64,000 nt of DNA from Podarcis erhardii (Eukaryota): assembly GCA_964252035.1 (NCBI GenBank), contig OZ176200.1. One strand, given 5' to 3'. The notes under the pieces were generated by a model. That model had not been told where the DNA came from. It made no database searches and saw nothing but the letters and a program-made list of their open reading frames with translations. The translations under genes and the position numbers were made by a program. Shown one piece after another: positions 3,461 through 62,078 of the stretch. Numbering within the stretch: position 1 is the first letter of the stretch; each line of letters begins with the position of its first letter.

Positions 3461-4647
3461 TTGTTGTTGTTTTTTGTTATAATATTTATTTTGGTTTTAT
3501 GTAATAAAACAGATATTACAGTCCAACAAAACAACAGAGAAATAGAATAAAAAACAACATAATCCAACAGAGATAAAAAACACAATATAAAAACATATAA
3601 CAGAAAAAGTAAAAAAGAACAGAAATTGAAGAAAAATTAGTTTTTTGAATTCTTATCTTTATAACCCTCTTTCCTGACTTCCTCACGTCTCCCTTTCCTG
3701 CATTCCCCTTTACTCAATCAAATTTAGCAGCTCCTTACCCTCTTTCAAATCTTAATCAATATTATACATTCCAACCTATTATGTCTTCTATTTTCCCTTT
3801 CTTTTTAAATACATTCTTGCATATTCTTTATAACTTAATCCCTTATATCCTTTGTTTAGTTTCGACATAATTTTACTCTGGTCTTACCCTTTTTTCTTAA
3901 AACATTTTTGCATATTTCTTTTTACTATGTCACTGATGCCATATTATCTTTATATCCAACATCATTTTAACATTCAAACATTTTACAATGTTTTTGGAGA
4001 TATTCTTTGAACTTCTTCCAGTCCTCTTCTACCGACTCTTCTCCCAGGTCTCGGATTCTGCCAGTCATTTCTGCCAATTCCATATAGTCTATCACTTGCA
4101 TCTGCCATTCTTCCAGAGTGGGCAAATCTTGTGTCTTCCAATACTTTGCGATGAGTATTCTTGCTGCGGTTGTTGCATACATAAAGAGTGTTCTATCTTT
4201 CTTTGGCACCAATTGGCCGACAATGCCCAAAAGGAAGGCCTCTGGTTTCTTAGGAAAGGTATATTTAAATACCTTTTTTAGTTCATTATAGATCATTTCC
4301 CAGAAAGCCTTAACCTTTGGGCATGTCCACCAAAGGTGAAAGAATGTTCCCTCAGTTTCTTTACATTTCCAGCACTTGTTATCAGGCAGGTGATAAATTT
4401 TTGCAAGCTTGACTGGGGTCATGTACCACCTATAGATCATTTTCATAATATTTTCTCTTAAGGCATTACATGCCGTAAACTTCATATTGGTGGTCCACAA
4501 CTTTTTCCAGTCAGCAAACATAATGTTATGACCAATGTCCTGTGCCCATTTAATCATAGCTGATTTAACTGTTTCATCCTGAGTATTCCATTTTAACAGC
4601 AAGTTGTACATTCTCGAAAGTATCTTAGTTTTAGGTTCTAACAATTC
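3461..4647 (-). mobile_element. 5'-truncated L1 LINE with 16-bp target-site duplication
   Basis: TSD CTGAGGATCTCTTTTG at 3445-3460 and 4648-4663; T-rich (antisense poly-A) end at 3461; encodes an ORF2 C-terminus. Confidence 0.92.
3967..4644 (-). pseudogene. L1 ORF2 C-terminal part (cysteine-rich zinc-knuckle region), 5'-truncated
   Basis: 225-aa open frame with CWKCKETEGTFFHLWWTC motif typical of L1 ORF2; no RT or endonuclease domain present. Confidence 0.9.
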
Positions 4648-48581: not shown

Positions 48582-48630
48582 CCTTCCTTCCTTCCTTCCT
48601 TCCTTCCTTCCTTCCTTCCTTCCTTCCTTC
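48582..48630. repeat. (TTCC)n microsatellite
   Basis: Direct inspection. Confidence 0.95.
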
Positions 48631-50327
48631 CATAATATGATCAGGAGACAGGTAACAGCAATTTTAGCAAAAATGCATGTTTTGTCACTGAAAGCCTTAT
48701 AGTTTAACTACAATTTAAGTAATTAAAGAGCATGGATGTAAGAAATCTGTATCAAAAACTTATCAAATCAAATGCTTCATTTGTAGTTGCTGGTGATTTC
48801 TTTTTATGGTTATAGCTAGATTTTTTTTACACTCAGCAACCTGATTTACCACATCTTTAAGTGAACATGTCAAAGCCATCACCACACAACTCCTCCAGCA
48901 CAATCTCAACTCAACAGACATATACTGAGGCCTGTGGTGGAATCCAGAACCTCATCCTAGTGCTCCCCTACTAATGGAGGAGAAGGGGAGGCAACTTAGA
49001 TGGTGAGGAGAAGCTTCAGAACAGATTTTTATGGGCTCCAGGGGCTAGAGGAAGGAAGGGGAAATGGGAAAAATCACCACCCCTCTTTCACCATTAGTGG
49101 GTGTCTCCTGGTGAATCAAAACTATATGCCCAAGGGTACCAATTGGATAAATTGGCAGAATGGACTGTGTCACTTTGTGTTGTGGGGATGGACAGTGCCA
49201 TAACCAGTAGAGGTGTATGTGCATCATTTTGTATTTAGGCACTGAAATCCTGCAACCTGGGGAAGCTGAGCATGGGAAAGAGCAGCCCTTTGTACGAAGC
49301 ACTCTTCTAGTCACTTCTATCACACCTCCATGTTTTGCACATCAATGTCATACAAAGCAAACATTCGAGCAATTCTTAAAGAGGTAAAATGGTGGCAAGA
49401 AACCCCCAGCTGTGCAGATCTTACATTCCCCTCTGTGTTGAGGCTCCACCAAGCCCATTGTCACCAATGACGGGCTTTGCTAGGGCCTCAGGATTTGCAC
49501 AATTACACTGTGTGCTGGTGCCAGCTGGGTCACTTTTAGACATCTAACCATCTTAGCATCCTCCAGCCCCCCAAAACATGGGTACCTTTAGCAGCAGTAG
49601 GAGTGTAGCCAAGCCCCAGAAGGCAATGCATGAGGAAGTTGCTGGGTGCCCTAGAACAGCCTCACTAAACTTGCTGCCTTCCAGATTTTGATGTTATTTC
49701 AGTGGCTACAGCTTGCATGTACCAGGTTTGGGAAGGCTGAGCTAAGACAGCCTAGCAAGATCATGTGTGACTAACCCTGAGGAGGAGAGGGAAGCTACAT
49801 CGGCTCCTGAGCAAAATTAACCATGGAACCTCCTTTAATGATGGGAATGATCAGCTTGTTTGTTTGTTTGTTTCAGTTAATAAACGATGTGATCATGGTT
49901 TTTTCAAAGGTTAGGCTAATATGGTAAGCAGATAACACACACAAACATACACACAGATTTCACATAGAAACTTTTTTTCCAGGATGCAACAAGGGGCTGC
50001 CCACTGCAAACCCCATAGGTGTACAGGAATGTCAAAGCTAACACCCCCCCCAAAAAAAACAAACCCTATTATGTGTCTGCATAAGACTTTAGAACAGATG
50101 TATCTGCACAAAGATTAAAAAAAAGTCACTGAATTTCAAGCTAGTGGGCAGAAAGAGGGTGAAGAGCTAAGCAAATTTCACTTATTCCTTGTTTCCTCCC
50201 TAAATATTTGATTCTAACCCTATGAAAGTGCATATGTCACATGTAACACATTTCTTCTTTTCAGCTGAAACACTCTACTTGCAAGGGTAGCCAACATGGT
50301 GTCCTCCAGAAGTGTTTGGGCTACAAC

Positions 50328-50632
50328 CAGGGGCGGAGGAAGGGGTGCGGTGGGGCCGGATCATCCCGGGTGTCACCACTGAGGGGTGTGGCAAAATGCC
50401 GGGTGGCACTCACCGCAGGGCCTGCAAACAGTTCGCCCGCCGCCACCCCCCTCAGCTGTAGGGCGGCTGAGTGGGAGGAGGCAGGCAGACTCAGAGGCCT
50501 TGTGGAGCGTCCTGCCCTGGCTTGCCCCGCCCCACGGTCAGCTGGCCCCGCCCATGTGAGTGGCTGGCCCCCTTCCCTGGGTGCAGGGCATGCACGCTGC
50601 CCCAGGCACCCGATCAACTTGCTCTGCCGCTC
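50328..50632. mobile_element. GC-rich non-autonomous hAT-like element nested in another MITE (host about 50284-50720)
   Basis: (G/A)CTACAAC duplicated at 50320-50327 and 50633-50640; imperfect TIR CAGGGGCGGAGGAAG/CTTGCTCTGCCGCTC; the host MITE resumes after the insert. Confidence 0.75.
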
Positions 50633-50810
50633 ACTACAACTCCGATCATCCCAGATCATGGGCCATGCTGACTGCAGTTGATAGGGGCTGGAGGTACCAG
50701 AGGGCACATAATTGGCTTGCCCTTCCTTTACTGGTTGACAGAAGACCATTTGACATAAAGTCATCTCTTGGATTGAGAGTTGGCAGAGTTCTAAAGGAAT
50801 GTGCATGTCA

Positions 50811-51005
50811 TCAACATGTTATTCCCTTCTGGACGGATACATACTGCAGTACAGAATGTAAGATAACTACTAAATTATCACCTGTTCTCTTTTTGCCTCC
50901 ACGACCACCTTTTTTTGTCCTGCCTCGCTTCCTACCACGTCCTTTCCCTTTACGGCAACCACCTTTCTTGCTGCGATGTCTGTGATATCGTCGGAATCTT
51001 GACAT
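50811..51005 (-). CDS. Putative protamine-like / transition-protein-like small basic protein (64 aa if unspliced; first 41 aa basic domain)
   Basis: ATG at 51005-51003 with A at -3 and an in-frame stop 12 nt upstream. The first 41 aa contain 12 Arg, 9 Lys, 10 Gly, 2 His and no Asp/Glu. Synonymous codons are varied, so this is not a simple repeat. All 7 CpGs in 50882-51005 lie in CGN Arg codons. Possible phase-1 donor CAG|GTGATA after 50882. Confidence 0.55.
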   Translation of the reverse strand: MSRFRRYHRHRSKKGGCRKGKGRGRKRGRTKKGGRGGKKRTGDNLVVILHSVLQYVSVQKGITC

Positions 51006-52838
51006 CTTCTCCTTTTCTTACATCTGTGTGGCAGATTTCTGCTCCAGGTGGAGCAAGATGCCTTTCTAGATCAGCTGGTGATGATCTGCTTGGAGTGTTG
51101 CATTGAAGATAAGCTTGACTTGGGCCCACAAGTCACCTATCAATTATGACATATGAGTGACTCTGCCTGCAGTGCTACATCATAATGGCCCGTCTCATGG
51201 TACATCACTTCTTGTTTTCTGCAGCCTTAGAAATATTGGAGATGGCCACAGAATACCACCATTCTGCCTTCGGACTTGATATACCCTGGAAGGATAGATT
51301 AAGGTCTATGTCCTGTTCCTACTTTCTCTTTATTAGCCAGAAGGAAATGCATGGTCTTCACCAGTTATTTCTCACCCCTGCCATTTGTAGTGTCCCATGC
51401 GAAGGCTGTGCACTGGATTCAGCTGAAGCCCAAATCAAATTGGGCTGATTTGTAGGAATCGAGGTTTCACTCAAGCCGGATGAGAACAACCTTGGATCAC
51501 CCCTGGACAGATCCAGCTGCTCAGAGCAGGCCAGGACATGAAATGGGAAGGAGGTAAGGAACGGTGAGAAGAAGGTTGGAAAGGAAGGGTGTGCAAGAAG
51601 AAGGAGAAGCTGCAGAGATCTGCTTTGCAAGCTCCTTGCCTGCAAAGCAGGCCCTTGCAAAGCAGCACCCAGCAGGATTGAATTCTCTACTCAATGACTC
51701 AATCCTGTAAGATGGCTGGTCAGCAGAGAATTCAACCCTGTGTGCTGCTTTTTCCAAGTGCCTTCCCTGAAAGGAAGAAGCTTGCAGAAAAGCACCCCAC
51801 AGAACCCCTGTGATCTTGGTTGAGGTGGGGTGGAGATGCAGCACCTCCTCATTTTGTCCCTTCCCAACTGTATGTTTAATCTGCTTTTTATTTTTATTTT
51901 TTTTTTAAAGCTAATTAAACTTTAGGCCTACCCCAAAACTGATCCAGGGCCAGATACAGAGTGAGGCTGGCATTTTCTGGGCTGTGGAGGCTGGGGGTGG
52001 CTGCACACAGCGCTTAACCCATGCTATTTTGGAGAAATGGATAAACTTCACCCAAAAGGCACATCACTGCTTCTAGCTCACTATCTGTAGTGAGCTAGAC
52101 ATTCTTCATTCTTTGACGCTATCTAGGAATTCTTATTTCGCCAAAATCAGGTTAATAGTCATAGGGACAATTAGGATGATGAACAATATTTCCCCTCCAT
52201 CCAACCTTTCCAAGTTGAGTTTCCTGTTGAGTGTGATTGTCTTCCAGCAGTTTTCAGGTTTTTGGAGACTCTGTCTTAGTATGAGTCTCCATGCCTTCAT
52301 TTGCCTTACCTAATAGCCATTGGCAACGATATACCTAACCTCATAAATTCGAACTTTCTAAAACTAATATGTACTGTTGTCTTAAAATATTGTGCAAATG
52401 CTGTTTCAACTTTATTGTATGTTGAAGTGGAGCTTCAAACATATCCTAAAATGTTTTCTGCCAATAGACATCTTTTTAAGCAATGTTCATTAAGTGAGGA
52501 TATTAAAAGAGCACCTTTAATAAACTTTCAACAATTGCTTGTTGAAAGTCTTGTGCTTTGCATGCCTCATTTGTTTGCAGAATCCTATGGGTTGGTCCAC
52601 CTCCACAGATGAAGGAGAGAAGAATAGGAGCTACACCTGTGTTATTTCAACAATTTTATGTTGTATAAAATGTAGATTTGGACAAAAGTGGCTTAATGAA
52701 GCCAGAATGACTTTGATAGTCTGGCACATCTTCTGTTAGGGAAATTATACTAATGGCCCTAGGCTAGGAGAAGGTTGGTGAAGATGACTCATCCTTTTTC
52801 TCCTCTCTCTCCAGTCCAAGGGAGAGGCAAGTCTGAGT

Positions 52839-55082: not shown

Positions 55083-57073
55083 TCTGACCGGACACAGGTT
55101 AGAGCTCAACGTCGAGCCTACCAAGTGGCGATAGCGACGGCGAAGAAGACTTTCTTCGCCGCCTCTATTGCATCTGCAGAAAATAATAGCAGGAGACTTT
55201 TTCAGGTGGTTCGGAATTTAACAGAACCACCTTTACCACCGGGGCTTTGTAAAGACCCCAAGATCTCCTGCAACGATTTTGCAAAGTTTTTTGCAGATAA
55301 AATCACTCATATTCGGAAGGAGCTAGACACCACCGTGGGAGCAGGGCTGGGGCGGGAGAGTGCTAGAGCTCTGTCTGGTCAAGTTGCATGGAATCGATTT
55401 CAATCCATTACCCCCGAGGATGTGGACAGGCTGCTTGGACGCGTGAAACCAACCACCTGTCTCCTGGATCCTTGCCCATCCTGGCTAATAAAAGCAAGCC
55501 GGGAAGGGCTGGGCGATGGGCTCTGCGGGGTGGTGAATGCTTCCCTCTGTGAGGGAACATTCCCAGATCCGCTGAAAGAGGCGGTCATTAAACCGCTTCT
55601 TAAAAAACCATCTTTAGACCCGGCCAGTATGGCCAACTATCGCCCAGTCTCAAATCTTCCATTCTTGGGCAAGGTGATTGAGCGCGTGGTTGCTGAACAA
55701 CTCCAGGCACGCCTGGAGGATGCGGACCATTTGGATCCCTTCCAATCGGGATTCAGGCCTCATCATGGGACTGAAACTGCCTTGGTCGCACTGGTTGATG
55801 ATCTCCGGCGAGCTAGGGACAAAGGTGAGAGTTGTTTCCTAGTTCTGCTGGATCTCTCAGCGGCCTTTGATACAATCGACCATAACATCCTTCTGGACCG
55901 TCTAGAGGGGCTGGGAGCTGGGGGCACTGTTATACAGTGGTTTCGCTCCTTCCTCCTGGGCCGTGTTCAGAAAGTGGTGGTGGGGGATGAGTGTTCAGAC
56001 CCCTGGGCCCTCACTTGTGGGGTGCCTCAGGGTTCCGTCCTCTCCTCCATGCTTTTTAACATCTATATGAAGCCGCTGGGAGAGATAATCAGGGGGTTTG
56101 GACTGGGTGTCCATCAATATGCAGATGATACCCAGCTCTACCTCTCTTTTAAATCAGAACCAGTGAAGGCGGTGAAGGTTCTGTGTGAGTGCCTGGAGGC
56201 GGTTGGAGGATGGATGGCGGCTAATGGATTGAGGTTGAATCCTGACAAGACAGAAGTACTGTTTTGGGGGGACAGGGGGCGGGCTGGTGTGGAGGACTCC
56301 CTGGTCCTGAATAGGGTAACTGTGCCCCTGAAGGACCAGGTGCGCAGCCTGGGAGTCATTTTGGACTCACAGCTGTCCATGGAGGCGCAGGTCAATTCTG
56401 TATCCAGGGCAGCTGTCTACCAACTCCACCTGGTATGCAGGCTGAGACCCTACCTGCCCGCGGACTGTCTCGCCAGAGTGGTGCATGCTCTAGTTATCTC
56501 CCGCTTGGACTACTGCAATGCGCTCTACGTGGGGCTACCTTTGAAGGTGACTCGGAAACTACAACTAATCCAGAATGTGGCAGCTAGACTGGTGACTGGG
56601 GGCGGCCGCCGAGACCACATAACACCGGTCTTGAAAGACCTACATTGGCTCCCAGTACGTTTCCGAGCACAATTCAAAGTGCTGGTGTTGACCTTTAAAG
56701 CCCTAAACGGCCTCGGCCCAGTATACCTGAAGGAGCGTCTCCACCCCCATCGTTCTGCCCGGACGCTGAGGTCCAGCGCCGAGGGCCTTCTGGCGGTTCC
56801 CTCATTACGAGAAGCGAGGCTACAGGGAACCAGGCAGAGGGCCTTCTCGGTAGTGGCACCCGCCCTGTGGAACGCCCTCCCATCAGATGTCAAAGCGATA
56901 AATAACTACCTGACATTCAGAAGACATCTCAAGTCAGCCCTGTACAGGGAAGTTTTTAATCTGTGATATTTTAGTGTATTTCTGGTTTTTATGGAAGCCG
57001 CTCAGAGTGGCTGGGGAAACCCAGCCAGATGGGCGGGGTACAAATAATAAATTATTATTATTATTATTATTAT
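55083..57073 (+). mobile_element. Young 5'-truncated L2 LINE
   Basis: Uninterrupted RT frame, 3'UTR stem-loop region and (TAT)n tail at about 57050-57073; TATTCTG at both junctions. Confidence 0.95.
55125..56966 (+). pseudogene. L2 ORF2 reverse transcriptase (613 aa, lacking the endonuclease)
   Basis: NYRPVSNLPFLGK, QSGFRP, LLDLSAAFDT, GVPQGSVL and QYADD RT motifs; the frame continues upstream to about 55083 and the GTG start is an artefact of truncation. Confidence 0.95.
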
Positions 57074-61498: not shown

Positions 61499-62078
61499 TT
61501 AATGTATTGATCTTGAGAAGTCACCCGGTGCTATACCAGCTGCACTGGCTCCCGGTGGAGTACAGGATCAGGTTTAAGGTGCTCGTTTTAACCTTTAAAG
61601 CCCTATATGGCCTAGGACCCTCATACCTACGGGACCGCCTCTCCTGGTATGTCCCACGGAGGACCTTACGGTCTGCAAATAAAAACATCTTGGAGATCCC
61701 AGGCCACAGGGAGGTTAGGCTGGCCTCAATCAGAGCCAGGGCTTTTTTAGCCGTGGCCCCAATCTGGTGGAATGCTCTGTCATAAGAGACTAGGACCCTG
61801 AGTGACTTGATATCTTTCCGCAGGGCCTGCAAGACAGAGCTGTTCCACCAGGCCTTTGGCCAAGGCACAGTCTGACCCCCTCTCTCCTTCTGTGATTTTC
61901 ATAGAACTGTAGCCCAATGGTTGCCATTAATTTGATTCTGAATTGATTTTCGAATGTATTTTAATTAATTGATTGCGATTTTATGTAAACTGTGCTATTT
62001 TTATTGTTGTTAGCCGCCCTGAGCCCGGCTTTGGTTGGGGAGAGGGGGGTTATAAATAAAATTTTATTATTTATTATT
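61499..62078 (+). mobile_element. L2 LINE 3' fragment (second subfamily)
   Basis: QLHWLPVEYRIRFKVLVLTFKALYGLGPSYLRDRL; 3'UTR ending GCCGCCCTGAGCC...TTATTATT. Confidence 0.9.

Follow-up and report, generated by a model that had tools for sequence, protein, structure and literature searches.

Transition protein 1 (TNP1; TP1, PF02079) is a protein of about 55 aa in which Lys and Arg each account for roughly 20% of the residues, accompanied by Gly/Ser; it has a very high pI and adopts no fold. It is expressed in spermatids from a tiny gene that sits in the gene-poor IGFBP5-TNS1 interval and comprises two exons, the first with about 40 codons and the second, a short one, encoding the C terminus. 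Protamine P1 is richer in arginine (about 45 to 70%), and its arginines form poly-Arg clusters; it is specific to spermatids, is present in sperm nuclei, and has its gene in the SOCS1-PRM-RMI2 interval. According to the literature, the protamines of reptiles and birds are rich in arginine and free of cysteine, transition proteins count as mammalian additions, and validated squamate protamine or sperm chromatin sequences are nearly absent from databases (PMC13756071).

Here, we followed up an original prediction that a stretch of Podarcis erhardii DNA (64,000 nt, the whole of which is called the window below) holds an unannotated gene for a lizard sperm basic protein. Our preferred reading, to which we assign a rough probability of 0.4, is that the locus is a real micro-gene whose product is a polycation that binds nucleic acid, most likely in the germ line. 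The features of the locus were as follows.

50883..51005, minus strand: start codon and 41-codon polycationic segment, recognized by its composition, a CpG observed/expected ratio of 1.1, and 7/7 CpGs in Arg codons
50811..50882, minus strand: final 23 codons and stop, either coding tail or intron, beginning at a possible donor, CAG/GTGATA
51006..51060, minus strand: probable 5′ leader, with an in-frame TAA at 51018-51020 and an upstream ORF (uORF) at 51018-51023, inside the 201-nt stretch found in RNA
50860..51060, no strand assigned: stretch with sampled 31-mers in RNA-run contigs (organism A, 0.74; D, 0.37; C, 0.32; E, 0.32)
50727..50732, minus strand: non-canonical poly(A)-signal-like hexamer, AGTAAA, which matters only if the gene is intronless

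The basic ORF comprises 64 codons on the minus strand (50811..51005), with its ATG at 51005 and its stop at 50811-50813. The ATG had been described as following an in-frame stop and having good context, and both properties were found, since an in-frame TAA lies 15 nt 5′ of the ATG and the −3 position is an A. Starting with MSRFRR, residues 1 to 41 include 12 Arg (29%), 9 Lys (22%), 10 Gly (24%), 2 His, and 1 Cys, with no Arg run longer than RR; the complete lack of Asp and Glu agrees with the predicted strongly basic segment free of acidic residues. This 41-residue segment has a pI of about 12 and a mass of 4.8 kDa, and the last 23 residues of the unspliced 64-aa ORF are mildly hydrophobic. 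The two KKGG motifs, noticed originally as a duplication, proved to be a 12-nt direct repeat that is in frame and has a spacing of 54 nt. Tandem Repeats Finder reported no tandem repeat in the basic tract, and thus a microsatellite-derived tract was ruled out. Upstream of the main ATG there is also a start-stop uORF (ATGTAA, 51018-51023, minus strand), which ends 12 nt before it and whose TAA doubles as the in-frame stop closing the basic frame upstream.

The ORF was then compared with the known basic proteins. It is close to TNP1 in size (41 to 64 aa versus about 55 aa), and both are very basic; the TP1 family typically has about 40% Lys plus Arg in similar shares, and the segment described here has 22% Lys and 29% Arg at a pI of 12. 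However, the basic ORF gave no match to the Pfam TP1 model. Its likeness to PRM1 lies in being a small polycation whose MSRFRR resembles the M-A-R-Y-R start mentioned in the original prediction, but it differs in having only 29% Arg with a longest run of 2, together with 22% Lys, 24% Gly, and one Cys, and in giving no match to the Protamine_P1 HMM (PF00260). With so little Arg and no poly-Arg cluster, the product is not a classical protamine, and it had originally been described as richer in Lys and Gly than classical PRM1. When the 64-aa and the 41-aa products were searched against Pfam-A by hmmscan, with the Protamine_P1 and TP1 models included, no family was reported at E values up to 1 and 10, although HMMER filters may suppress matches of low complexity. 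Since neither profile was matched, membership in the PRM1 or the TNP1 family is unsupported. Protamine-like (PL) proteins, adenovirus protein VII, and DVNP belong to a common class of disordered proteins with about 50% Lys plus Arg and no acidic residues, and the resemblance of the basic ORF to them is compositional only. Language-model features placed Adeno_VII (0.67), DVNP (0.61), and, third, Protamine_P1 (0.61, with 128/256 features shared) as the nearest clusters, all scores being below the informative level of the tool and serving as leads only. In size and composition, the predicted product resembles transition protein 1 and the "protamine-like" class more closely than it does true protamines.

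Next, the composition of the ORF was set against chance. No other 41-codon open stretch in the six frames of the 64 kb had at least 18 Lys/Arg residues (22 were observed here), and the maximum reached per 41-codon open stretch in third-order Markov simulations of the window (n = 100) was 16. When the bases of the ORF body were shuffled as mononucleotides, none of 20,000 sequences showed at least 21 Lys/Arg with no Asp/Glu in frame 1; under mononucleotide shuffling of the ORF's own bases, the frame stays open in 11% of cases. First-order Markov sequences generated from the dinucleotides of the ORF itself produced an open frame with at least 21 Lys/Arg and no Asp/Glu, in any of three frames, once in 50,000. 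These results confirmed that the composition of the basic ORF is not due to chance, and a chance ORF was thus ruled out by the Markov simulation and shuffle statistics.

A second departure from expectation was found in the distribution of CpGs. The original prediction counted 7 CpGs, all in Arg codons, in a CpG-poor background, and this description held: the CpG observed/expected ratio was 1.1 in the 123 nt of the basic segment, versus 0.24 in the window, 0.10 in the 395 nt upstream, and 0.16 in the 162 nt downstream. All seven CpGs occupy positions 1 and 2 of CGN Arg codons in the basic frame, such that CG dinucleotides fall in codon phase 0 in 7/7 cases and GA dinucleotides in 0/13, the latter accounting for the lack of acidic codons. 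Both products of CpG deamination (CGN to TGN or CAN) are non-synonymous in the basic frame alone. In the alternative frame named in the original prediction (…QDSDDITD…), C-to-T changes at 7/7 CpGs are synonymous, and therefore CpGs under selection for that frame should have decayed like those of the flanks; having no ATG and no family match, and with its CpGs free to decay, the alternative frame was rejected. The CpG pattern favours constraint on the basic frame, as judged from the codon table, but a very young sequence could also account for the retained CpGs. A single CpG-type transition separates each of the two His codons (CAC and CAT), as well as the only Cys codon (TGC), from an Arg codon, which would be compatible, speculatively, with a sequence that was formerly more Arg-rich. 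Accordingly, the proposal of protein-level selection at this locus is supported in that CpG retention and dinucleotide phase are frame-specific signs of constraint.

To describe transcription of the locus, we used sampled 31-mers, of which 19 lie in 50860-51060, taken as a subset of the 91 in 50600-51400 at equal sampling density. Their occurrence in the sequencing runs of related organisms, inside the 201 nt and outside it, was as follows.

Organism A, RNA (X1, X3, X4, and X19, one study): inside, 14/19 (0.74); outside, 6 to 10 of 72
Organism D, RNA (X7): inside, 7/19 (0.37); outside, 0 to 1 of 72
Organism C, RNA (X6): inside, 6/19 (0.32); outside, 0 to 1 of 72
Organism E, RNA (X8): inside, 6/19 (0.32); outside, 0 to 1 of 72
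Organism B, RNA (X5): inside, about 3/19 (0.16); outside, about 15 of 72
Organism G, probably DNA (X12 and X13): inside, 18/19 (0.95); outside, about 37/72
Organism G, RNA (X15 and X16): inside, 0; outside, 0

Words of 50860-51060 were thus found in RNA of five studies, four of which were clearly exon-limited. In organisms A, C, D, and E, the matches cluster within the 201 nt or do not extend beyond it, and the stretch thus behaves like a transcribed unit of exon size in at least four relatives. Organism B was uninformative, because its words are spread evenly across the region (about 0.2), and this even share may come partly from a GC-rich block at 50300-50720. For organism G, a close relative, the genomic runs were nearly complete for the exon words while the RNA runs contained none, indicating that expression is not ubiquitous; one further run of this organism likewise contained none of the words. 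Organism G retained 18/19 words in the exon and about 37/72 in the flanks, a difference that is in the direction expected under constraint but is not significant by a rough Poisson estimate.

The alternative that survives best, although we regard it as rather doubtful, is a non-coding transcript or untranslated exon on either strand, in which the basic ORF is untranslated or non-functional. The RNA-run contigs are strandless, and usable plus-strand splice signals, read by eye, surround the same roughly 200 nt, with an acceptor near 50848 and a donor, CAG/GTGGAG, near 51048; the lack of a relative in the searched protein collections and of a canonical poly(A) signal would also fit this explanation. 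Nevertheless, none of the plus-strand frames across the stretch is open, the minus-strand ATG is preceded by an in-frame stop and carries an A at −3, and the frame-specific composition together with the placement of the CpGs would be very hard to obtain without coding constraint or a coding origin.

Returning to the coding reading, we considered the structure of the gene. After codon 41 there is a fair donor in phase 1, CAG/GTGATA, whose first intron base is 50881, as judged by eye against the consensus MAG/GTRAGT, and it sits exactly at the switch from polycationic to hydrophobic composition. Acceptors were enumerated over the next 2.2 kb, and none made a convincing second exon. Without introns, the gene would encode a 64-aa protein, whose hydrophobic tail is atypical for sperm basic proteins. 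Downstream of the stop there was no canonical poly(A) signal, AGTAAA being the sole similar hexamer within about 550 nt. An AATAAA hexamer was seen by eye on the minus strand at 51329-51334, about 325 nt upstream of the ATG, and could mark the end of an upstream minus-strand transcript or repeat, or else be an A/T-rich promoter element. The RNA words bear on splicing as well. The share of words in RNA of organism A (0.74) equals that in DNA runs of organisms H, J, and K, and a common variant haplotype is the simplest account of this equality; RNA would then cover the entire 201 nt, including 22 nt past the donor. The k-mer shares thus hint that the transcript is possibly unspliced at the putative donor, and a transcript of about 300 to 400 nt would fit the word count of organism A.

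These observations also bear on the explanation that a larger protein begins with the ORF as its first coding exon, spliced at the donor 50882/50881, with the basic stretch serving as a nuclear or nucleolar targeting segment. The position of the donor-like site, directly after residue 41 at the composition switch, speaks for it. Moreover, the word-indexed search of 5.8 billion clustered proteins, in which the 64-aa ORF found no match, covered only proteins of 35 to 112 aa. However, phmmer, which has no length limit, found no match either among 1.84 billion representatives (E ≤ 0.001), the 2.2 kb downstream contain no plausible exon, the RNA share of organism A suggests coverage of the 22 nt beyond the donor, and there is no CpG-island promoter. 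We therefore consider a larger protein unlikely.

Further searches for relatives of the basic peptide were negative in the PDB, in IMG/VR viral contigs (tblastn), and in JGI metagenome contigs. The 141-aa antisense ORF had no match in the word-indexed search, exact-protein contig look-ups with four local ORFs had nothing on record, and Pfam gave nothing credible for all remaining local frames and the neighbouring ORFs. At the locus, Rfam gave nothing above threshold and ARAGORN gave no hit. A scan of the longest ORFs of the window and of the ORFs close to the locus recognized no flanking gene, and the literature yielded neither the peptide nor a printed TNP1 sequence. The lack of a catalogued protein match fits an unannotated gene for a small basic protein, and the gene looks lineage-restricted.

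Taken together, these data are best explained by a transcribed micro-gene on the minus strand, single-copy in the window, whose product would be a small (about 42 to 64 aa), intrinsically disordered polycation with a pI of about 12. Such a protein would be expected to bind nucleic acids electrostatically and to neutralize their charge, and its most likely setting would be that of a Lys plus Arg "protamine-like / transition-protein-1-like" nuclear basic protein, a term used here for a functional class only, acting during the condensation of spermatid chromatin. Translation of the basic ORF, its nuclear or DNA-binding function, and its germ-line expression are what we infer, and on composition alone "small DNA-condensing polycation" remains the best functional reading. 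The narrower proposal of a lacertid-specific sperm nuclear basic protein, Lys/Arg/Gly-rich, with a single Cys, transition-protein-like, and unrelated in sequence to PRM1 or TNP1, is possible but more doubtful than the micro-gene itself. Of the original prediction of an unannotated gene for a lizard sperm basic protein, the part that stood is a non-random, transcribed ORF with no catalogued match, while a relation to Protamine_P1 or TP1 was not supported by Pfam. If the sperm reading is true, an intermediate in the replacement of histones by protamines, or an alternative packaging protein, arose outside mammals, and expression in spermatids would make the view of transition proteins as a mammalian invention directly testable in lizards. 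If there is no spermatid expression, the locus would still be a clean example of a gene missed by annotation, being a very short ORF of low complexity that is recognizable only by intrinsic frame-specific signals, with CpGs surviving where any decay alters an Arg.

Alternatively, the protein could be real, small, and basic and yet have a role outside the germ line, e.g., as a nucleolar, RNA-binding, or other somatic protein. The words occur in RNA of five studies, and one would hardly expect every one of these to have used testis libraries; in addition, the richness in Lys and Gly is unlike the arginine-rich, cysteine-free protamines of sauropsids (PMC13756071). On the other hand, the two RNA runs and one other run of organism G lack any of the words, the promoter region is CpG-poor, as is typical for tissue-restricted genes, and no relative was found in other vertebrates, while housekeeping basic proteins are conserved. 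A somatic role is thus quite unlikely, and a germ-line micro-gene is retained as the preferred reading.

Finally, it is very unlikely that the ORF belongs to a repeated element, be it a solo LTR, a TE accessory ORF, or the arginine-rich N terminus of an endogenous viral capsid, with the RNA words stemming from other copies: a multi-copy origin would explain the high k-mer retention and the high CpG, and a TE-like GC-rich block adjoins the basic ORF, but the window has no second copy, LTR pair, or inverted repeats, TG..CA ends with 5- to 6-bp target duplications are about as frequent as expected by chance and lack terminal inverted repeats, the neighbouring and downstream ORFs carry no TE, viral, or capsid Pfam domain, no tblastn relative was found in IMG/VR, and the RNA words are confined to about 200 to 300 nt.

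The surroundings had been called a repeat desert, which is inaccurate, since a TE-like block begins about 90 nt after the stop of the ORF and an ORF for a LINE reverse transcriptase lies 4 kb away. The former, at 50300-50720, is a 420-nt block with 65% GC and a CpG observed/expected ratio of 0.40, in which motifs typical of squamate short interspersed repeats were seen by eye; no second copy of it occurs in the window, and a tRNA-like head was not detected in it by ARAGORN. The latter, at 55125-56966 on the plus strand, is an intact 613-aa ORF of a LINE-type element with an RVT_1 domain (Pfam, E = 1e-36), and a diverged second copy of its 3′ part (69 nt, 75% identity) is located 4.9 kb downstream at 61573-61641. 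On the minus strand, a 225-aa ORF at 3967-4644 had no Pfam match above threshold but by eye looks like the C-terminal end of an L1-type ORF2, including a Cys/His motif. A (GGAA)n microsatellite occupies 48600-48640.
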